64,000 nt of DNA from Macrostomum hystrix (lineage: Eukaryota > Animalia > Platyhelminthes): NCBI GenBank assembly GCA_950097015.1, contig CATNEN010000005.1:62001-126000 (forward strand). Reading direction: 5' to 3'. Of this stretch, positions 4,102 to 62,730 are shown one piece after another. The notes under the pieces were generated by a model, which worked only from the letters and a program-made list of their open reading frames with translations, was not told the origin of the DNA and ran no database searches. The first letter of the stretch is position 1, and each line of letters begins with the position of its first letter. Both the position numbers and the translations under genes were made by a program.

Positions 4102-7100
4102 CTACTTGACCAATCCTGCTTTCTTGGCTTCGGTCTCGTAGATAAGCAGGCGCCACAGTTTAACAACAAACACTTCGGCTTCATCGTCTAGAACTAGGAC
4201 CATCTCGCTGAGTATAAGGTCCGGCTTAGTGCGATCCATCACTTTACCGCAGACAAATTCAGTTAACTGCGCCTCCTCTTCGCCAATGTATTCGATAATC
4301 TTTTTATTAATCCAAGGTTTGACTCGATTCTCCATGAGTGTGGCGTCAACAATGCTCCAATCGAGATTATAGGCGAATAGTTCATCTTTGGCCGTTGGTA
4401 TGCCATCGATGAGTCGTTTAATTAGAGCCTTCTTTTCTTCTTCGTTGGCGAATGCGGATGTAGCTGAAGTTGACGGTTGAGACGTTGTTGGTCTAGTCTG
4501 AGCAGTGTGCTGCTGCTGCTGCTGCTGCTGCGTCGCTGGCGGCGAAGGTTTACGATCCTCTGCATCATCATCGTCGCCCATCGTCATAGCGTCATGATGA
4601 TCGTCGTCGTCGTCTTCATCGCGATCATCCTGACTGCGATTGTTCTGAGCTTCGATTTTATGCTGGTCGTCGGATCTGAATAAAAAACAAAATAGAAAAA
4701 ATAAATAAACTAGAAGCTATAATTTAAAGTCACAGAAATGCACATTAAGGTACGAGCCATTATGTATCGCCAGATTGTACAGAACATTTACCAAACATAA
4801 AAAGGACACCAAAAACTTTAAAAGTAAATGAGGCAGAACTATTTTGGAAGGAATAATACAAAAGCAAAAACCGAATTTCAACAAGAGATAGTCTGCTAAA
4901 GTACATCATAAATCATCCCTATAATTATAATAAATTTTATCTAAAACAGCGAAGAGTAGCCAGAAAACATCCTATATTTACACCAGTAATCATCCTAAAA
5001 GTACACCAGTAATTATTCTAAAAGAACACCATTAATCATCCTAAAAGTGCACCAGTAATCATCCTAAAAGTACACCAGTAACTATCCCAAAAGTACAACA
5101 GGAATTATCCTAAAATTACACCAGTAATTATTCTAAAAAAACACCATTAATCATCCTAAAAGTGCACCAGTAATCATCCTAAAAGTACACCAGTAATCAT
5201 TCTAAAAGTGCACCAGTAATCATCCTAAAAGTACACCAGTAATCATTCTAAAAGTACACCAGTAATCATCCTAAAAGTACACCAGTAATCATCCTAAAAG
5301 TACACTGGGAATCACCATAAAAGTACACCAGTAATCATCCTAAAAGTACAACGGGAATCACCATAAAAGTACACCATAAATAAACCCTAAAAGTACGTCA
5401 ATGAAGAACGCTGTCCAAACGCATATGAACTCACCTGGATTTGGAATTATCTCCCTCGCCATTAACAGCAACACTAGCCACCGTGGCGTTATCAGCGGAG
5501 TCAACATCAGACCTCTGATTATCAATTTTAGATTGGACGGATTTCAAATCCTGAGCTGGAGGCGGAGTCGGCGGACTGAGGAGTTTGCGCAGGTGAGCAT
5601 CTCTGGCTTCGTCTAATTCGGCGCAGATTGCTTCAACATCAGCCGGTTCGCGACCTTCGGCTAGTAGACGGCGCCTAGCTTCGCCGACCTCCTCTAGCTC
5701 ACGAGCCCTGTCTCGTTCGTCCTGCTCTCGCTCGCGATCCCGCTCTCTAAGCCGGCGACGAAATGCGTCGCCTCTGTAAAATTTTGCGTCGTCCGATTCG
5801 TCGTCGTATTCGGCTAGAAAGTTGCGCATCTCGCGCGCCTCGTGTGCCTCCTTGGCCAACCGTTTCTCCTCGCGTTCCCGCTCTCGCTCGTATTCGCGAG
5901 ACTGCGCAATGGGACAGAGTTTGTTTGGGATTTAGGAGCAACACCAATATCCCCCCATGAAGATCACTAGTTTCCCTTAACTTTTTTTGGTTGTTCCTTC
6001 CCCTCCTGAGTTCCGTTGGATGTTCCTTCCCCTCCTGAGTTTTGTAGGCTGTTCCTTCATTTCTTGAGTTCCGTAGGCTGTTCCTTCCCTTCCTCAGTTC
6101 CGTAGGCTGTTCCTTCATTTCTTGAGTTCCGTAGGCTGTTCCTTCCCTTCCTCAGTTCCGTAGGCTGTTCCTTCATTTCTTGAGTTCCGTAGGCTGTTCC
6201 TTCATCTCTTGAGTTCTGTAGGCTGTTCCTTCATTTCTTGAGTTCTGTAGGCTGTTCCTTCATTTCCTGAGTTCCGTAGTCTGTTCCTTCCCCTCTCGTT
6301 AGTTCCGTAGGCTGTTCCTTTCACTCCCCTAAGTTCCACAGGCTATTTCTTCCTCTCTCCTTAATTCCATAGGCTGTTCCTTTAAATCTCCTTAGTTTAT
6401 TAGCCCAAAAACCACCGATTGTTTACCTTCTTTTTCTCCCTCTGGTTCCAGTGCTTTAGCTCCTTCTGATAAGACTCCTCCTTATCTAGCAGTTTCTTCT
6501 CCTGACGTCGACGTTCAGCAGCCTCTTCATCAGCTTCGGCTGTAGCCTTCTCAGAAGCCGCAGTTGCCGATCTAGCCTTAGACGAGGCGCTTTCATTCTT
6601 AGATCTCTCTTCTCGCTCCTTATCCCGATCGCGTTCTCGCTCCTTCTCGCGCTTCTCGCGTCGCCGACGTTCGCGCTCTCGCTCCCTTTCACGCTCTAGA
6701 CGCTCTTCGAGTTTAGGCGAGTCGTCTCGATAGCGGGAACGGAAGATCTCGATTTCTCTATTGATAATGTCGCGCTTGTCGTTGTCTAGATCCATGTCAT
6801 CTAGGGACTGCTTGGGGCCGACCAGTTTAGGTGCCCGAACGTCCAATTCGCCGTCCTCAACTCGTTCAATTTCTGGTAGGAAGCGCTGAACAATCTGGAA
6901 GAAAATGAGCCAATTTACGTCAAAAACAAGTTTTATAACGTCAAAAGAAAAAATCATTCAAGTAAGATTAATTAGAGAGGCAGGGCTAGATAAGTTTGAA
7001 AGAGAGAAGTAGATTGAAGGAGAGTCAGGGTTGTACTTCGCTCCAAAAAGGGAGGTAGATAATGTTCAAGGAGGTATAAAGCAGTATAATAGTCTACTAT

Positions 7101-9306: not shown

Positions 9307-10446
9307 GTGCTGGGCGCCCCACCCTCCACTCCCTTCGAAGGCATGAATGCTTTCCTCAACGCTACACCCATTGACATTTTCATCAAGGGGGAAGCAGCAA
9401 AGTCCACCCGTCATCTCCTTGATGCGGGTGTCTCCTTCCAGAATTCGCGAGCCTTCTCGAAGCGCTCCCTTCTGCCTCACTCTGACCTCTGCCTAAAAAC
9501 TCTGGGCGAGTGCGGAGGGCTCACCATCCTTTCGGATGGGGCCCCGGCCACTTTACTCCGGAGCCACAGGTACAAAGTCAGCATCTCCCCTCGTAATGAG
9601 GTAAAGGACTGCTGGGATGACCCGGCAGTCCACTGTTACACTGATGGCTCTCTGATGAATGGTAAATTGGGATTCGGAGTGTGCGTCGCCTTGGGTGGTG
9701 AGGTCCTCTGGACCCACTCCCAATACTGTGGCAAGAGCTCTAGCGTTTTCCAAAACGAAGTGCTCGCCATCAGCTTCTGTGCGGCTGAGCTGCGCCAGAG
9801 GCAACTGGCTGGTCGGAGGATCTTTTTTCACTCCGACAGTCAAGCAGCCCTCAAGGCCCTCAGCCACTGCACCTCTTGCTCCAGAACCACCTTGGACTGC
9901 AACACCCAGTTAAACAGGCTGGCGCAGTCTAACAAGGTGGAGCTGTTGTGGATCCCTGGGCATGCCGGGTTCACAGGGAATGAGATGGCGGACCAGCTTG
10001 CTAAGGCTAGAGTAGCCAGCTCCCTGATGGGCCCGGGCCTGGAGTCCCCGATCCCTGTCTCTGTTGTCAACTCCAGCATCAACCACTGGATGGAGACCCA
10101 GCACCGGAGGAGGTGGTCCAGCACCCTGAACTGTCGCCAGTCCAGGGCTGCGGTGCCAACCCCCTCTAGTAACCTGCATAAGGCCTTACTCAGGCTTAAC
10201 CGCAGAGACCTAAGAGCAGTCACTATGGCCCTTTTGGGACATAGCTGCTTCACCAGACACCGCTACCTTCAAGGCCACTTGCCTGAGGAAACGTGTCCCT
10301 TCTGCTGCTCCGGTCGTGAAAATGCCAAGCATTTCATCTGCCACTGCCCGGCCTTCACCCGGGCTAGGCTAAAACATCTCGGGCCGGCACCAACTCTTGC
10401 CAAAGCCTGCTCGCCCGAGAACATCCCACAGCTTGCCCACTTTTAA
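9307..10446 (+). mobile_element. 5'-truncated non-LTR retrotransposon (RNase H + C-terminal CCHC zinc knuckle; I/R1/LOA-like), antisense to RBM25
   Basis: RNase H motifs YTDGS, VFQNEVLAI, FHSDSQAALKAL, LWIPGHAGFTGNEMADQLAK, then CPFCCSGRENAKHFICHC. The frame is open for 379 aa but there is no RT core; no TSD identified. Confidence 0.9.
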
Positions 10447-13020: not shown

Positions 13021-13246
13021 TCAGGCCCACTGACACTGCGCTAATACCATATTAGCCGAGCAACAATCTATCTGCCATCCGTCATCTTCAATGACCAACT
13101 CGCCTGGCTGAGCAGCTGAGCTCATTGTGTCTTGAAGGCAGGATAAGTCTTCCATGGACACTGAGGGAACATCTGACAACTCGGCTGGTCTTGCCTGCTG
13201 ACACTGATCAACCTGCTGGCTAGGATAACCATGAGGAGGAGAAAAG

Positions 13247-13281
<35 letters not shown>

Positions 13282-16200
13282 ATGGTAACATTGCTGACAA
13301 GGTTGGCTTTGATGAATATTTGAGTGCGCATGCGAATCATGTGGCGGAAACTGATGATAATGCTGGGGAAAATGATGAGGCGAATCTGAAATTAAAACCG
13401 GCAGTTCGGCTGAGACTACTTACTTTAAATTAATTATAGTAGTATTGTGCGCGAATGTTTGTTTGATTATATTTTCAACTCACCAAAACTCCACGGCAAT
13501 CTCCAGGAGGTTGACAATTCGCTCTGTTCCGAGGTTTGTCGACTCTGTTGCCAGGAGTTTGACGATGGCGGCGGTGGTAGCAACGGTGGCGGTGTCGGAG
13601 CCAGAGATGATTGATGCCCACCTGCAGCATTGTTGCCATGAAAGCCGCTGCCGCTGCCCGAAGCCAACGAGCCTCGCCCAGATGAGGAGGGGCAGCAGCT
13701 CACGCTGCTAGAGCTGTCGGTGGCGGCTGAGATTGTGGAAGCTGCAGATGTATTAGCGCCGTCTTGCAGTCGATGAACGGTTTGACGATCCGATGACAAC
13801 AAAGTTGAACAGGTGGACGATAATTCCGGTTCCAACTTCAACAAGTCCTTGGATGAGACCGCTGCGGAGGGTTTGAGATGCTTGCATGTCTGTATTCTTC
13901 CTCTCATCAAACCTCATTTCTTACTCACTAGACACTTTATTTCACCACCCACACCATTCATCATTTTCCCCATTACATTCTTGTTTTCCCTATCCCAATT
14001 TGATATTCCTAATTCCTTCCTCATTTATCATGTTCCATTCCTAATTTTCCCCCAACGCTTTCCTCATTTCCGCGAATACCATTTCATATTTTTCCACCCC
14101 ATTCCTTAATTTCCCAATCACATTCCTTATTTCCCAATCACATTCCTCATTTCCCAATCACATTCGTCATTTCCCAATCACATTCCTTAATTTCCCAATC
14201 ACATTCCTTATTTCCCAATCACATTCCTTAATTTCCCAATCACATTCCTTAATTTCCCAATCACATTCCTTATTTCCCAATCACATTCCTCATTTTCCAA
14301 TCACATTCCTTAATTTCCCAATCACATTCCTTAATTTCCCAATCACATTCCTTATTTCCCAATCACATTCCTCATTTTCCAATCACATTCCTTAATTTTC
14401 CAATCACATTCTCCTTTCGCCCATCACATTTCTTGCCCATTCATGTCAGTTGAAATCATCCGTTAGCTCTCACCCGGAGCAGCGTCAGCGAAGCATTTCA
14501 ACCGGTTCTGAATGAAACAATGCTGCTCCTCTTGCTTAACAAGACTAGCAACCGCAGCTAGCTTTGTTCCCTTCCTATTAATTCTCCCCAGTCTTGGTCG
14601 CGGCTGGGCCACCATCAACAGCTGATCCACCGGGCCGGCTAAACCCGGAGCAAAATATCCCTCATCGTCAGGTTCGTCGAATTCTCCTCCGAGATCCGCG
14701 GCTTCCAGCCAGCATTGGTCCATCGCGGCCGAGAACGGCTGCCTCGGTGAATAGTCAGAATCTCCGGCTACAAGAGTCCGGCTGCCGACGCTCGCGCTGC
14801 TCACAGGCGTTCCACCTCTGCCGCCGACTCCGCCGCCTTCGCCAGCACCAGCTTTGTAACCGCCACCGTTGGATCTTCCATAGCGTCTAAGCCGATTCTC
14901 TTCCGCTTTGGAGCTCCAGCTTTCGCCTTTGAACTTCTTGGTGGCGTAGGCTTCCGCACCGTGCACCGTTTTGATGTGCTTGCGAAGCGAGCTTGGGTCC
15001 GTGTACCGCTTGCCACAGCCGCTGGCTGCTCGGCACTGGTACGGCTTCTCGGTAGAGTGAGTCCGATTCTGATGCTTCGCACGATCCGAGGCGTTTGAGA
15101 ACGCTTTGCCGCAGCCTGGAACCTCGCAAGGGTAGGGCTTCTCGCCAGTGTGTGATCGGAAGTGAGTCTTTATATTCTCTAGCCGCGAGTAGGCCTTCGT
15201 GCAGCCCGGGAACTGTGGGATCGGTTAGTAATTTGAGCATCGGTTAGTCTCAACGATGGAATATCCTGTCTCTAGGATGGAATGTCCTGTCTCTACGATG
15301 GAATATCCTGTCTCTACGATAGAATATCCTGTCTCTACGATGGAATATCCTGTCTCTACGATGGAATATTCTGTCTGTACGATGGAATGTCCTGTCTCTA
15401 CGATGGAATATCCTGTCTCTACGATGGAATATCCTGTCTCTTGGATGGAATATCCTGTCTCTTGGATGGAATATCCTGTCTCTACGATGGAATGTCCTGT
15501 CTCTACGATGGAATTTCCTGTCTCTAGGATGGAATGTCCTGTCTCTACGATGGAATATCCTGTCTCTTGGATGGAATATCCTGTCTCTAGGATGGAATGT
15601 CCTGTCTCTACGATGGAATATCCTGTCTCTACGATGGAATATCCTGTCTCTTGGATGGAATATCCTGTCTCTTGGATGGAATATCCTGTCTCTACGATGG
15701 AATGTCCTGTCTCTACGATGGAATATCCTGTCTCTACGATGGAATTTCCTGTCTCTAGGATGGAATGTCCTGTCTCTACGATGGAATATCCTGTCTCTAT
15801 GATAGAATATCCTGTCTCTAAGATGGAATATCCTGTCTCTAGGATGGAATATCCTGTCTCAACGATGGAATATCCTGTCTCAACGTTGGAATATCCTGTC
15901 TCAACGTTGGAATATCCTGTCTCAACGTTGGAATATCCTGTCTCAACGATGGAATCCACAATTTAGAACTTACCGAGCATTTGTAGGGCTTCTCTCCTGT
16001 GTGTCGTCTGACATGGACATTTAGCATATAGAGAGCTTTGAACGGCTTCAAATGGCGACTGCAGCCCTGCCAGTGACAGACAAACTCCTTGCTATCGCCG
16101 CTGCCTTTCACATGCAGTTCATTCACGTGCTGCGGGTTTGTGGCGAGTTCATAAATCCACGGCTTCATAAATTCACGAGCTCAAGTTAATTCAAGACTAC

Positions 16201-17104
16201 TCACATCGACCAGTTCAGTATTCGTCGCGAAATGTTCGCAACAGCCTGTCCAACCACATTCAGTTGCCACACTGCCGCTGCCTGTTCCATCTAGCTCATA
16301 TTCGTCCTCGGGTTCATCATTAGCCGCCTTCTTGTCCTGACTGTCCTCGGCTTCGTTGTCAAAATTGTCGGCGTTGTCTTCAGTGGACGAATTCTGTTCA
16401 TTAGGCGCTTTGTCAAAACTCGCAGAAGATGTCAGCACCGACGACTTCTGTCGATAGAAAACCGTATTTGCAGCGGCGGCTGCGGCGGCGGCGGCTGCGG
16501 CGGCGGTGATGTTTGTCGGCGGTGTCCTTGTCGGCGGGAAAAGTGGCGAGCCGCCGCCGCCGCCGCCACCGCCGCTGCCAAATGAGGCTGCCGACAGATG
16601 GCCGATAGATCCGTGGCTGCCGCGCGAGCTCGGCGACCTCTTGGATCCCAGCACCGGAATCCAGGTCAGGCAGTCGTGCGAAGCTGTCACCTGGCTGAGC
16701 TCCAAGTTGAAAGCGGAGTTGTCAACGGACGACTGGGACATTGCGCGTTTATTTGCTCCGCTGCCAAACTGATCGACAGCCGGCTGCTGCTGTTGCTGTT
16801 GAAATTGAGTCGGTGGAAACAATGGCGTGTAAGCGCCGCGAGCTGCGTAATGCGGCGAATATGGCTGCCACGGATTCGGCTGCTGCTGCTGCTGCTGCTG
16901 ATATGACAGGTGCTGCTGGTACTGCTGATAATGCTGTGGCTGCACTGTGAAGCTGGGGTTCGTTGGCACTGATCTGGCTCCATTTGGCAAGGGCTGAGAA
17001 TAGAATGCTGGATGATGCTGATAATGATGATGAAGCTGCTGCTGTTGAGGCTGCATTTGCTGCTGATACAAAGGGTGACGAAAGTTGGACGGCGTTGTTT
17101 CCAT
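13021..17104 (-). CDS. GLI: GLI/cubitus interruptus family zinc-finger transcription factor, ~845 aa; exons 17104-16205, 16129-15974, 15212-14474, 13861-13484, 13385-13021
   Basis: Five GLI-type C2H2 fingers (CGWTGC..ELVD|HVNELH; [21 protein letters not shown]; [22 protein letters not shown]; [16 protein letters not shown]; [18 protein letters not shown]) and an SUFU-type GSIGHLS motif. All four GT-AG introns join in frame (phases 0,0,1,1) to TGA at 13021. The start and the last two exons are less certain than the finger exons. Confidence 0.92.
14100..14420. repeat. 20-21-bp intronic minisatellite (GLI intron 3)
   Basis: Unit TTCCCAATCACATTCCTTAAT. Confidence 0.9.
15245..15958. repeat. 21-bp intronic minisatellite filling GLI intron 2
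   Basis: Unit ATGGAATATCCTGTCTCTACG; occupies ~710 of 761 intron bases. Confidence 0.97.
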
Positions 17105-17554
17105 GACAACTACAGACGCCGCTGACTGATTGTAAAAATAGTTTCTCGCTTTGAGATCTGTTTGAATAGAAGTCCAGTTTAGAATGACCAAGCATTAGCT
17201 AATCAATGTTTTTATAATTGATTTACTCGAAATCTTGGATAGATTTTACTGGTTATATTTATGTCCTAACATGATATGGTCTGTCTTTGCAGTGTGGGTA
17301 ATTAATCATTTAAGCATTCCTAGACACAGAATAACTCTATTAATTAATTAATTCTGATAAGCGCGCCATGAGCCAAGGCTAGAGAGACGAGCGCTAATTT
17401 GATAATTTACTATTTGTTGCAGCACCTATACAAAGTAGCAAATTTTGAGATTTTACTGTGGAAAAAAAGGAAAAAAATGCTAGAAAAAATGCAGAAGGCA
17501 AGACAAAAGATAAGATGTTTGGAAAAGTAAGGATAACGGCGAGAGCGAAAGGAT

Positions 17555-18300
17555 ATGAAGGGGAAATGGCGAGGGAGACGCAGGGGAATGGCGAGGGAGA
17601 CGCAGGGGAATGGCGAGGGAGGCATGGGAGGAATGGCGAAGGAGGCACGGGGGAATGGCGAAGGAGGCACGGGGGAATGGCGAGGGAGGCACGGGAGGAA
17701 TGGCGAAGGAGGCACGGGGGAATGGCGAAGGAGGCACGGGGGAATGGCGAGGGAGGCACGGGAGGAATGGCGAAGGAGGCACGGGGGAATGGCGAGGGAG
17801 GCACGGGGGGAATGGCGAGGAAGGCACGGGGGGGAATGGCGAGGGAGGCACGGGGGGAATGGCGAGGGAGGCACGGGGGGAATCAAGGACCACTAGTAGA
17901 TAGCACTAGTAGATACTACTCTAGCACTAGATAGCACTAGTAGATACTACTCTACTTGAGTAGTCCGTGGGGGGAATGGCGAGGGAGGCACGGGGGGAAT
18001 GGCGAGGGAGGCACGGGGGGGAATGGCGAGGGAGGCACGGGGGGGAATCAAGGACCACTAGTAGATAGCACTAGTAGATACTACTCTAGCACTAGATAGC
18101 ACTAGTAGATACTACTCTACTTAAGTAGTCCGTCGGGGGAACGGCGAGGGAGGCACGGGGGGAATGGCGAGGGAGGCACGGGGGGAATGGCGAGGGAGGC
18201 ACGGGGGGGAATGGCGAGGGAGGCACGGGGAAGGCGAGGAAGACACGGGCGAATGGCGAGGGAGGCACGGGGGGGAATGGCGAGGGAGAAAATGGGGAAG
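17555..18300. repeat. G-rich 21-bp minisatellite with a duplicated ~90-bp ACTAG-rich insert
   Basis: Unit GGGGAATGGCGAGGGAGGCAC; the block AATCAAGGACCACTAGTAGATAGCACTAG...GTAGTCCGT occurs at 17881 and ~18046. Confidence 0.9.
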
Positions 18301-19394
18301 AGGTGATGTTGCAACTAAGCACGTGTTGTGAAATAGCGATAAACAGATTCAACTTACCAACATTAATTAATAAGTTGAAAGCATTCTCACTTGGTTATTC
18401 TAGATATAGTAAATCCAAGTAAATTTATGGAATAAAAAGATAACGTGTGAAAGCATTTAAATCCTTAATTAATGTTAAACTTTCGTGCTAAACTTTAACT
18501 GATAAAGCTTTAGTTCCTACAAGCATAAACTTAGAATTTTTTTTCTAAACTGCTCAGCGACAATAAGCGAATCATAGCGAGGGTAATAAACTACGTTGTC
18601 TTGCTTTACAGTTGTTGCCATAAATTTGTGATAGTTAATATAGGAAAGGCAGACACAGATAGATGTTGAGAGAAGAGAATGGGTGGTGCATGAACTATAA
18701 ACAGACCCGTATTTTACTGGCCAGCGTGAGAATAGCTTATAGAGAATCTTGGAAAAACTGAACTCACCTTTGTCTACATTCTACGAGCTGCATGCTATAC
18801 AGCTAAAGCTTTTCAATTCTAGCGCTGTAAAACGGACAATAGAAAAGATTCTTCGCAATTTCCATGTCTGTCTCATTTTCGCCAGAATGTTCAATGTTAG
18901 TAAATGAGTAAGAAATATAGATTTAGGACAGATAGTCAGAGAGTGAGAAGACAGTCTTGTACTCGTACTGTGTAGAACTGAAAGCTTCATTCCACAGTAG
19001 TTTTGTGTGAGATTTCTTAATTATAAAAATAAATCCCATTGTTAAACAGCGTTGAAACTACGAGAGTAACTTTCATGTTTAAAGTGCTAAAAAACTATGA
19101 ATAAACCTGGGTTCTTATGTTTGCCACATTTTCCACCAGCTACAGAACATGAACTCGGTGGGGAATTAAATATCAAGCATTTTTAACTTCCTAATGTGTT
19201 AAAATTGCACTTTTCTTAAGCTTTTCGTGTAGAGAAGAATTTAGTTATATCGATCTTTACACATTCGCTACTAAGTTTTCTATAACAAAATAAATTAAAA
19301 TCCATTTTTTCTTAAAAACACACAGGCAAATTTAATCCCGACTTCAACCTGTCCTATAGGAAAATCCCAATTCCATCAATCGACATTTCAAGAT

Positions 19395-22300
19395 ACAAAT
19401 CCCAAGGATGTCAGGAAGCTACAGAAATCCAAGTCCCAACTCGGTGGGGATGTCAGGAAGCTACAGAAGTCCAAATCCCAAATCGGTGGGGATGACAGGA
19501 AGCTACAGAAATCCAAATCCCAACTCGGTGGGGATGTCAGGAAGCTACAGAAATCCAAATCCCAACTCGGTGGGGATGTCAGGAAGCTACAGAAATCCAA
19601 ATCCCAACTCGGTGGGGATGTCAGGAAGCTACAGAAATCCAAATCCCAACTCGGTGGGGATGTCAGGAAGCTACAGAAATCCAAATCCCAATTCGGTGGG
19701 GATGTCAGGAAGCTACAGAAATCCAAATCCCAAGGATGTCAGGAAGCTACAGAAATCCAAATCCCAACTCGGTGGGGATGTCAGGAAGCTACAGAAATCC
19801 AAATCCCAACTCGGTGGGGATGTCAGGAAGCTACAGAAATCCAAATCCCAACTCGGTGGGGATGTCAGGAAGCTACAGAAATCCAAATCCCAACTCGGTG
19901 GTGATGTCAGGAAGCTACAGAAATCCAAATCCCAACTCGGTGGGGATGTCAGGAAGCTACAGAAATCCAAATCCCAACTCGGTGGGGATGACAGGAAGCT
20001 ACAGAAATCCAAATCCCAACTCGGTGGGGATGTCAGGAAGCTACAGAAATCCAAATCCCAAGGATGTCAGGAAGCTACAGAAATCCAAATCCCAACTCGG
20101 TGGGGATGACAGGAAGCTACAGAAATCTAAATCCCAACTCGGTGGGGATGTCAGGAAGCAAAAGAAATCCAAATCCCAACTCGGTGGGGATGTCAGGAAG
20201 CTACAGAAATCCAAATCCCAACTCGGTGGGGATGACAGGAAGCTACAGAAATCCAAATCCCAACTCGGTGGGGATGTCAGGAAGCTACAGAAATCCAAAT
20301 CCCAACTCGGTGGGGATGACAGGAAGCTACAGAAATCCAAATCCCAACTCGGTGGGGATGACAGGAAGCTACAGAAATCCAAATCCCAACTCGGTGGGGA
20401 TGTCAGGAAGCTACAGAAATCCAAATCCCAATTCGGTGGGGATGACAGGAAGCTACAGAAATCCAAATCCCAACTCGGTGGGGATGACAGGAAGCTACAG
20501 AAATCCAAATCCCAACTCGGTGGGGATGTCAGGAAGCTACAGAAATCCAAATCCCAATTCGGTGGGGATGACAGGAAGCTACAGAAATCCAAATCCCAAC
20601 TCGGTGGGGATGTCAGGAAGCTACAGAAGTCCAAATCCCAAATCGGTGGGGATGACAGGAAGCTACAGAAATCCAAATCCCAACTCGGTGGGGATGACAG
20701 GAAGCTACAGAAATCCAAATCCCAACTCGGTGGGGATGTCAGGAAGCTACAGAAATCCAAATCCCAACTCGGTGGGGATGTCAGGAAGCTACAGAAATCC
20801 AAATCCCAACTCGGTGGGGATGACAGGAAGCTACAGAAATCCAAATCCCAACTCGGTGGGGATGACACGAAGCTACAGAAATCCAAATCCCAACTCGGTG
20901 GGGATGTCAGGAAGCTACAGAAATCCAAATCCCAATTCGGTGGGGATGTCAGGAAGCTACAGAAATCCAAATCCCAATTCGGTGGGGATGTCAGGAAGCT
21001 ACAGAAATCCAAATCCCAATTCGGTGGGGATGTCAGGAAGCTCCAGAAATCCAAATCCCGATTCGGTCGGGATGTCAGGAAGCTACAGAAATCCAAATCC
21101 CAATTCGGTGGGGATGTCAGGAAGCTACAGAAATCCAAATCCCAACTCGGTGGGGATGTCAGGAAGCTACAGAAATCGAAATCCCAACTCGGTGGGGATG
21201 TCAGGAAGCTACAGAAATCTAAATGCCAACTCGGTGGGGATGTCAGGAAGCTACAGAAATCCAAATCCCAACTCTGTGGGGATGTCAAGAAGCTACAGAA
21301 ATCCAAATCCCAAATCGGTGGGGATGACAGGAAGCTACAGAAATCCAAATCCCAACTCGGTGGGGATGACAGGAAGCTACAGAAATCCAAATCCCAACTC
21401 GGTGGGGATGTCAGGAAGCTACAGAAATCCAAATCCCAACTCGGTGGGGATGTCAGGAAGCTACAGAAATCCAAATCCCAACTCGGTGGGGATGACAGGA
21501 AGCTACAGAAATCCAAATCCCAACTCGGTGGGGATGACAGGAAGCTACAGAAATCCAAATCCCAACTCGGTGGGGATGTCAGGAAGCTACAGAAATCCAA
21601 ATCCCAATTCGGTGGGGATGTCAGGAAGCTACAGAAATCCAAATCCCAATTCGGTGGGGATGTCAGGAAGCTACAGAAATCCAAATCCCAATTCGGTGGG
21701 GATGTCAGGAAGCTCCAGAAATCCAAATCCCGATTCGGTCGGGATGTCAGGAAGCTACAGAAATCCAAATCCCAATTCGGTGGGGATGTCAGGAAGCTAC
21801 AGAAATCCAAATCCCAACTCGGTGGGGATGTCAGGAAGCTACAGAAATCGAAATCCCAACTCGGTGGGGATGTCAGGAAGCTACAGAAATCTAAATGCCA
21901 ACTCGGTGGGGATGTCAGGAAGCTACAGAAATCCAAATCCCAACTCTGTGGGGATGTCAAGAAGCTACAGAAATCCAAATCCCGATTCGGTGGGGTTGTC
22001 AAAAAGCTACAGAAATCCAAATCCCAATTCTGTGGGGATGTCAGGAAGCAAAAGAAATTTAAATGCCAACTCGGTGGGGATGTCAGGAAGCTACAGAAAT
22101 CCAAATCCCAACTCGGTGGGGATGTCAGGAAGCTACAGAAATCCAAATGCCAACTCGGTGGGGATGTCAGGAAGCTACAGAAATCCAAATCCCAACTCGG
22201 TGGGGTTGTCAAAAAGCTACAGAAATCCAAATCCCAACTCGGTGGGGATGTCAGGAAGCTACAGAAATCCAAATCCCAATTCGGTGGGGATGTCAGGAAG

Positions 22301-61229: not shown

Positions 61230-62730
61230 TCACTCTAAGTCACTGTCACTCTCAGTCACTGTCACTCTCAGTCACTCTCAGTCACTCTCAGGGACTACCA
61301 GTCACTCTCAGTCACTCTCTGTCACTCTCAGGGACTACCAGTCACTCTCTGTCACTCTCAGTCACTCTCAGTCACTCTCAGTCACTCTCAGTCACTCTCA
61401 GGGACTACCAGTCACTCTCAGTCACTCTCTGTCACTCTCAGGGACTACCAGTCACTCTCTGTCACTCTCAGTCACTATCAGTCACTCTCAGTCACTCTCT
61501 GTCACTCTCAGGGACTACCAGTCACTATCAGTCACTCTCAGTCACTCTCTGTCACTCTCAGGGACTACCAGTCACTCTCAGTCACTCTCAGTCACTATCA
61601 GTCACTCTCAGTCACTCTCTGTCACTCTCAGGGACTACCAGTCACTCTCAGTCACTATCAGTCACTCTCAGTCACTCTCAGTCACTCTCTGTCACTCTCA
61701 GTCACTCTCAGGGACTACCAGTCACTCTCAGTCACTCTCAGTCACTCTCAGTCACTCTCAGGGACTATCAGTCACTCTCAGGGACTATCAGTCACTCTCA
61801 GTCACCCTCAGTCACTCTCAGTCACTCTCAGTCACTCTCAGGGACTACCAGTCACTCTCAGTCACTCTCAGTCACCCTCAGTCACTCTCAGTCACTCTCA
61901 GTCACTCTCAGGGACTACCAGTCACTCTCAGTCACTCTCAGTCACTCTCAGTCACTCTCAGGGACTATCAGTCTCTCTCAGGGACTATCAGTCACTCTCA
62001 GTCACTCTCAGTCACTCTCAGTCACCCTCAGTCACTCTCAGTCACTCTCAGTCACTCTCAGTCACCCTCAGTCACTCTCAGTCACTCTCAGTCACTCTCA
62101 GTCACCCTCAGTCACTCTCAGTCACTCTCAGTCACTCTCAGTCACCCTCAGTCACTCTCAGTCACTCTCAGTCACTCTCAGTCACCCTCAGTCACTCTCA
62201 GTCACTCTCAGTCACTCTCAGTCACTCTCAGTCACTCTCAGTCACTCTCAGTCACTCTCAGTCACTCTCAGTCACTCTCAGTCACTCTCAGTCACTCTCA
62301 GTCACTCTCAGTCACCCTCAGTCACTCTCAGTCACTCTCAGTCACTCTCAGTCACTCTCAGTCACTCTCAGTCACTCTCAGTCACTCTCAGTCACTCTCA
62401 GGGACTATCAGTCTCTCTCAGGGACTATCAGTCACTCTCAGTCACTCTCAGTCACTCTCAGTCACCCTCAGTCACTCTCAGTCACTCTCAGTCACTCTCA
62501 GTCACTCTCAGGGACTACCAGTCACTCTCAGTCACTCTCAGTCACTCTCAGTCACTATCAGTCACTCTCAGTCACTCTCAGTCACTCTCAGTCACTCTCA
62601 GGGACTACCAGTCACTCTCAGTCACTCTCAGTCACTCTCAGTCACTATCAGTCACTCTCAGTCACTCTCAGTCACTCTCAGGGACTATCAGTCACTCTCA
62701 GTCACTCGGACAATGTCAGTCACTTTCAGT
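61230..62730. repeat. 10-bp minisatellite
   Basis: GTCACTCTCA with GGGACTA(C/T)CA variant units. Confidence 0.97.

Follow-up and report, generated by a model that had tools for sequence, protein, structure and literature searches.

The 64,000-nucleotide window analysed here (positions 62,001 to 126,000 of contig CATNEN010000005.1 in the Macrostomum hystrix assembly GCA_950097015.1) contains a minus-strand gene of the GLI/Cubitus interruptus (Ci) family that consists of five exons, with frames compatible across all four junctions. Exon 4 (13484..13861; 126 codons, phase 1 at both ends, joints 14474|13861 and 13484|13385) encodes a serine-rich peptide, GANTS...GRGSLAS (13659..13760, residues 34-67 of the exon, within the minus-strand open frame 13913..13470), which the first-pass annotation had described as the protein kinase A (PKA) phosphocluster of GLI with its serines in place and its RR pairs gone. 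The peptide is real, and we describe below the loss of PKA sites from flatworm GLI proteins and the conservation of a short core in the cluster remnant that this peptide may represent.

The coding part of exon 1 (16205..17104, ATG at 17102-17104) was established from transcript contigs and translation, and encodes a glutamine-rich N-terminus and a SUFU-binding motif before ending within finger 1, of which it supplies the first half. The motif, S-I-G-H-L-S (16592..16609), is of the SYGHLS type with isoleucine in place of tyrosine; GS[YI]GHLSAAS was found in every GLI/Ci protein with which the translation was compared, with isoleucine in both macrostomids and triclads, so that the predicted SUFU-binding motif is retained. 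Finger 1 is divided between exons 1 and 2, of which the latter (15974..16129, joints 16205|16129 and 15974|15212) completes finger 1, encodes finger 2 and begins finger 3. Exon 3 (14474..15212) contains fingers 3-5, followed by an 18-residue stretch, an acidic DDEGYFAP motif and a variable tail. The assignment to the GLI family was borne out by matches of exon 3 to 2GLI, a crystal structure of the five GLI fingers (near-identity over 85 aligned residues, E = 4.1e-42; frame 15224..14466), and of exon 2 to the Pfam domain zf-C2H2_15 (PF23561; 1.5e-16; frame 16180..15842), and all five tandem GLI-type C2H2 fingers are present. The coding part of exon 5 (13021..13385, stop codon at 13021-13023) encodes a polyglutamine tract, a conserved motif at 13144-13173 and 12 conserved C-terminal residues; its C-terminal motifs recur in Macrostomum lignano, Dugesia and cestodes, and the 3' untranslated region continues below 12900.

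That exon 4 is part of the mRNA, which the first-pass annotation had wished to see confirmed by cDNA, is supported by spliced transcript contigs. In a search of read runs with the segment 12900-17300, four runs from a single study were found to contain about two thirds of the words sampled, and a run from another study a small share; contigs were compared for three of the former (X2, X3 and X4) and for the latter (X1). The contigs from X2-X4 are 1.7-1.8 kb in size, extend to about 17158 beyond the start codon, are 100% identical to the window with no mismatches, and represent a single spliced form in which positions 16130-16204, 15213-15973, 13862-14473 and 13386-13483 are skipped, each segment being bounded by GT..AG on the minus strand. 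Since the contigs are spliced, the runs derive from RNA, although the library type is not on record. The joints of exon 4 rest on X2-X4, which belong to one study and count as one line of support, and X1 supports the first junction, 16205|16129, only. These contigs, together with codon evidence of selection given below, rule out that exon 4 is unexpressed or that the gene is a pseudogene. Sequence searches were made exon by exon or with database proteins as proxies rather than with a joined protein model.

Several tandem repeats were observed within the gene. Intron 2 is nearly filled by a minisatellite (15247-15955; about 34 copies of a 21-bp unit) and intron 3 by another (14100-14434; about 16 copies of a 20/41-bp unit), both cleanly spliced out in the contigs. 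The polyglutamine tract of exon 5 corresponds to a perfect (TGC)n repeat of 11.7 copies on the plus strand (13247-13281), at which the contigs of three runs break.

A search of representative proteins with exon 3 yielded mostly poly-zinc-finger proteins among the top 150 matches and only two GLI relatives, both from M. lignano: BOX15_Mlig021779g1 (917 aa) and BOX15_Mlig027262g5 (PAA84734.1; a 493-aa fragment). In a tree of the finger 3-5 region, which rests on 127 columns only, the window gene grouped with Mlig027262 (support 99/90) and then with Mlig021779 (100/100), within a weakly supported flatworm group (82/84). The gene is thus a macrostomid GLI/Ci and the orthologue of BOX15_Mlig027262g5, it groups in the tree with the flatworm clade to which planarian GLI-1 belongs, and the two Macrostomum genes stem from a lineage-specific duplication. 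The Mlig027262 locus has the same five-exon layout; identity to the window is 86% over fingers 3-5 and 65% at the amino-acid level for exon 3, a 25-residue stretch and the C-terminal 12 residues are identical, and RRxS is absent from both. Synonymous sites are near saturation, with about half of the conserved residues encoded by another codon, which shows that the window comes from another macrostomid species. A word search with the tail of the M. lignano GLI protein P0135 retrieved only the protein itself and one fragment. PAA84734.1 is a truncated model from which exon 1 and the initial part of exon 2 are missing; both are intact just upstream in NIVC01000363.1 (locus positions 5055-6111), where exon 1 encodes SIGHLS and the beginning of finger 1.

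To place the loss of PKA sites in a wider context, we counted RRx[S/T] C-terminal to the fingers in GLI/Ci proteins from flatworms and other animals. As the first-pass annotation had observed, exons 3-5 of the window gene contain none, and the gene lacks the set of at least three such sites that PKA-primed proteins of the Ci, GLI2 and GLI3 type carry some 180-380 residues beyond the fingers. The sole [RK][RK]x[ST] match after the fingers, RKGT at 14565..14576, is not conserved, M. lignano having RLRQGKV at this place. Further flatworm GLI proteins were gathered with a profile built from four flatworm GLI proteins, and in the resulting sample of 22 proteins (the two macrostomid genes, Dugesia GLI, Schmidtea GLI-1, and proteins from cestodes, trematodes and a monogenean) RRx[S/T] was present at the cluster position in none; a stray RRCT occurs in one trematode GLI at +690, outside that position. 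Full-length GLI/Ci proteins from 17 other spiralians (molluscs, brachiopods, an echiuran, a nemertean and a bryozoan) contained 3-6 sites, located at about +200, +235, +275 and +355 after finger 5, and 3-6 sites were also found after the fingers in seven proteins from insects, a crustacean and vertebrates. From composition, one would expect about 0.2-0.6 sites in a non-flatworm tail and no more than 0.8 in a flatworm tail. The sites are thus strongly enriched in the other animals but not in the flatworms, and the more relaxed pattern of two basic residues before x-S/T was not enriched over expectation in any flatworm tail either.

What had been presented as an oddity of one GLI protein is therefore common to all 22 flatworm proteins: as far as sampled, the loss of PKA sites is a trait of the phylum and not peculiar to the window gene, and the comparison suggests that the RRxS priming sites were lost before the macrostomids split from the other sampled flatworms. 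A literature search returned no report of a flatworm GLI lacking PKA sites, with a prior mention being possible in the two founding planarian papers. Single RRx[S/T] sites were found in each of two chelicerates, a horseshoe crab and a tick. GLI/Ci of Limulus and Dermacentor retains only the first RRxS (RRDS or RRGS, at about +220), together with the surrounding serines and SPYDPIS, in what looks like a partial and independent loss.

We also examined which part of the peptide is conserved. The conserved core covers 15 residues (13650..13694, with SSG-R-GS-L at its heart), all of which are identical to the M. lignano orthologue although 10 of the 15 codons differ, indicating that the core is under purifying selection. 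By contrast, exon 4 outside the core shows 46% identity to M. lignano where it can be aligned, the first 34 residues of the exon have no counterpart there, and a 12-residue half of the peptide is missing even from M. lignano. An alignment of four full-length flatworm proteins with MAFFT left the motif unaligned in the low-complexity tails, and motif-anchored segments were used instead. The anchored alignment of 17 flatworm proteins, from macrostomids to schistosomes, yielded the motif V-S-S-G-[L/I/V/R]-G-S-[L/M]-x-S, which takes the form D-D-A-S-x-V-S-..-S-S-G-R-G-S-[L/M] in M. lignano, A-L-S-E-V-S-S-G-I-G-S-L-S-S in planarians and [D/E]..L-S-[A/T]-T-S-S-Q-V-S-S-G-[L/V]-G-S-M-x-S-S in cestodes and trematodes; in the window gene it corresponds to a 21-residue stretch. 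Both macrostomid paralogues have GRGS[LM], and the other flatworms have I, L or V for the arginine. The description of the cluster as eroded thus suits the part of the peptide outside the core and not the selected core itself, and an alignment to flatworm GLI proteins, proposed as a check on the first-pass annotation, holds across the phylum for the core but not for the 12-residue half.

In the parasitic flatworms there is a second, upstream motif, SSGVGSGLTNLTQ, which resembles the pre-cluster motif S-L-T-D-L-S-N-R-M-T-Q-I-K of other animals and is followed by QVSSGLGSM, in the same order as in the canonical proteins. Cestode and trematode GLI also contain D-S-G-Y-P-[D/E]-S directly after the first SSG[V/I]GSG motif, a second degron-like site that is missing from macrostomids and planarians.

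The canonical phosphorylation cluster reads RRDS-NTSTISSYLSSMRSDASP in spiralians, followed by a further 11-residue stretch, and RRDS-NSTVSSYYGSMRS in insects. Scored without composition correction against a profile built from 121 clusters of non-flatworm proteins, exon 4 obtained 23.0 bits as compared to 9.8 +/- 3.0 for shuffles of the exon (0 of 1000 reached the observed score), and the profile aligned 19 residues of the peptide to STSTvSSAY... The same profile reproduced the alignment to RRDS-STISSAY-SRRSS-...-SSRRSSEAS of vertebrate GLI3 that was the basis of the first-pass annotation; GLI3 and GLI2 have the same domain order as the window gene and differ in having six RRx[ST] sites where the latter has none. 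When the flatworm and canonical alignments were compared using hhalign, S-q-V-S-S-G-x-G-S-M was placed on S-t-x-S-s-x-Y-x-S-x-r-s, a stretch located between PKA sites 1 and 2 of canonical GLI/Ci, with a score that none of 300 column shuffles reached. The positions also agree: counted in residues from finger 5, the cluster region spans about +192 to +219 in the window gene and +182 to +257 in other animals, and in free-living flatworms the motif lies at about +165 to +220. On this evidence the core is probably homologous to the canonical cluster.

Drosophila Ci, like the window protein, has five GLI fingers, the SUFU motif and a serine-rich cluster about 200-260 residues after the fingers, and it differs in that RRDS, RRSS, RRSS and RRQS prime CK1 and GSK3, while the window protein has no such site and the third cluster is missing. 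The PKA sites of Ci that prime CK1/GSK3 are S838, S856 and S892 (PMC8855225), and the primary Slimb contact is pS-pT-Y-Y-G-pS, which resembles the consensus D-pS-G-x(2-4)-pS (PMC3567827). The window sequence S-S-G-R-G-S fits this consensus with S for D and aligns with modest support to the Ci site, its best candidate counterpart; we give homology to the Slimb site specifically somewhat less credence than homology to the cluster as a whole. The arginine of GRGS may not derive from an RR pair: one alignment favours such an origin, the other places a hydrophobic residue at this position.

Several results weaken the case for this homology, for which standard statistics give little support in a low-complexity stretch of this kind. 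Shuffling of the 34-residue peptide alone gave the observed score in 19 of 2000 cases (p about 0.01), and the cluster profile did not score the tails of M. lignano and Schmidtea above shuffled sequences. When exon 4 was compared by BLASTP with a GLI3 and with GLI of the brachiopod Lingula, nothing was found at the cluster, the best matches being located elsewhere (E 0.14-0.18), HMMER with default composition correction produced negative scores that were no better than those of shuffled sequences, and the P-value given by hhalign itself for the match was 0.21. The claim that the serine scaffold aligns to the cluster is accordingly upheld by the uncorrected profile, the shuffles and the position, and finds no backing in BLASTP or corrected HMMER. 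A rival alignment places the flatworm motif on the pre-cluster motif instead, SSGVGELSQRITELK in a crayfish Ci. Furthermore, a paralogue outside the sample, such as planarian gli-2 or gli-3 or a further GLI gene of the window's genome, might keep PKA sites, which would change the picture, and a literature search found no binding, phosphorylation or processing data for any flatworm GLI.

The lack of BLASTP and bias-corrected HMMER matches and the P-value of hhalign would fit an alternative in which the serine-rich stretch is generic low-complexity disorder that resembles the cluster by chance, and SSGxGS[LM] a short flatworm-specific linear motif with another role, such as a docking site, a Ser/Thr degron of the Cul3-SPOP/HIB type or a homologue of the pre-cluster motif. 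The poor conservation of the 12-residue half in M. lignano and the presence of a similar SSGVGELSQ upstream of the cluster in crayfish Ci also fit this explanation, and Ser/Thr-rich SPOP/HIB degrons exist in Ci/Gli, as indicated by the reference list of PMC3567827. Against it, the motif lies where the cluster does, at +190 to +220 from the fingers, the scores exceeded two independent shuffle controls, the core shows no clear match to the SPOP-type pattern nonpolar-polar-S-S/T-S/T, and the parasitic flatworms carry both SSGVGSGLTNLTQ and QVSSGLGSM in the canonical order. We regard this explanation as unlikely, albeit the least improbable of the alternatives to the interpretation given next.

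The interpretation that we favour, to which we assign an even chance, is that flatworm GLI has a remnant of the serine-rich cluster whose core still acts as a phospho-switch or degron, with no priming by PKA. The core SSGRGSLAS, of the flatworm pattern V-S-S-G-Phi/R-G-S-L/M-x-S, would correspond to the part of Ci that makes the primary contact with Slimb, and is nearer to the D-pS-G-x(2-4)-pS consensus than the Ci site itself. As such, it may still serve as a phosphodegron for SCF-Slimb/beta-TrCP, or as an equivalent phospho-dependent switch. A conserved acidic residue upstream (D/E three residues before a serine) could allow CK1 to start unprimed and continue to serines at +3 or +4, the candidate starts being D-D-A-S-x-V-S in M. 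lignano, T-D-S-S-S-S-V-S in the window gene, S-E-V-S-S-G in planarians and D/E-x-L-S-x-T-S-S-Q-V-S-S-G in the parasitic flatworms, after which GSK3 would use the S-x-x-x-S spacing. Control by Hedgehog would then be exerted mainly via SUFU or another kinase step. The suggestion of the first-pass annotation that this GLI escapes PKA priming is plausible as judged from the sequences, and in macrostomids a weak PKA input may persist through a half site, in which arginine occupies -2 and the +1 residue is hydrophobic.

A stronger version of the latter possibility is that PKA still controls flatworm GLI through non-consensus sites, namely the GRGS-L half site, RRYG[RK][ST] after the fingers, or RKGT. 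PKA tolerates R-x-S, and conservation extends to both macrostomid paralogues for GRGS[LM] and to all three macrostomid proteins for RRYG. Yet the arginine is replaced by I, L or V in planarians, cestodes and trematodes, RKGT is not conserved, the serine of RRYGRS is not at the consensus distance, and the tails show no enrichment of basic-basic-x-S/T sites in any flatworm, all of which make such control improbable.

GLI-family proteins can be uncoupled from Hedgehog, as in Caenorhabditis elegans, where TRA-1 is regulated off the canonical Hedgehog-PKA route and where, as in other nematodes, the canonical pathway is absent. That the GLI of the window has likewise left the pathway altogether would agree with the absence of PKA sites and with the macrostomid-specific duplication, after which one copy could have taken a new role, but it is very doubtful given that the planarian GLI-1 clade shows the same loss while GLI-1 is required for hh/ptc-dependent outputs (PMC5055395), that the SUFU-binding motif is intact and that the candidate degron core is under purifying selection. 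Flatworms differ from nematodes in having retained hh, ptc, smo and sufu as well as a GLI-1 that responds to Hedgehog (PMC5055395). In Schmidtea, knock-down of gli-1 phenocopies that of hh, and GLI-1 acts below ptc and mediates ptc-dependent expression (PMC5055395).

Planarian GLI-1 (Schmidtea mediterranea D2ILS3; Dugesia japonica GLI D0VYP4) falls in the same flatworm group of the tree as the window gene, shares a 14-residue motif with it and likewise has no RRx[ST] after the fingers, with S-E-V-S-S-G-I-G-S-L-S-S located at +165. It differs from the window protein by an isoleucine for the macrostomid arginine and by a glutamate three residues before the SG serine, and also in the kind of evidence available, being a Hedgehog effector by RNA interference (PMC5055395) while the window gene is known from sequence and transcripts. 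Because this proven effector shares the loss, Hedgehog-independence is unlikely for the window gene. Of the two outcomes that the first-pass annotation had offered, rewired or Hedgehog-independent signalling, the former is the better word.

PKA phosphorylation of Ci/GLI is regarded as a conserved hinge of Hedgehog signalling, and in current models (PMC8096101) Smoothened restrains the PKA catalytic subunit and thereby keeps GLI unphosphorylated. Tentatively, and with the balance of probability still against it, we propose that the flatworm phylum as a whole passes the Hedgehog signal without PKA phosphorylating GLI. The sites would have been lost in the common ancestor of the sampled lineages, the Slimb/beta-TrCP contact would have been sharpened to S-S-G-x-G-S and either brought under CK1/GSK3 control with acidic priming or rendered constitutive, and SUFU would be the regulated step. 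If true, the Smoothened-PKA-GLI axis, which is widely seen as a bilaterian core, would be dispensable to animals whose Hedgehog pathway still works. Flatworm GLI, with no PKA consensus, a degron-like core under selection and a SUFU motif, offers a natural experiment on which parts of the relay are essential, and the question can be addressed in two laboratory flatworms, M. lignano and S. mediterranea. Taken alone, the window yields a modest result, an expressed GLI orthologue of an ordinary kind; what is of interest is the pattern across the phylum.

Two further similarities were discounted. The 10-residue proline run (13575..13604), which the first-pass annotation had matched to GGPPPTPLP of GLI3, is not matched at the corresponding position of the M. 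lignano orthologue, nor of the proteins from other flatworms and other spiralians, and is probably a chance effect of low complexity. The same is probably true for LPPPPSS, a 7-residue identity with Drosophila Ci.

Outside the gene, further long minisatellite arrays are located upstream at 17400-18350 and 19390-21000 of the window and can be read as peptide repeats in several frames; one of these arrays has a 42-bp unit that is translated as ...SPPSWDLDFCSFLT... On the opposite side, a 379-aa open frame on the plus strand (9307-10446) resembles the RNase H and C-terminal part of a protein from a non-LTR (long terminal repeat) retrotransposon.

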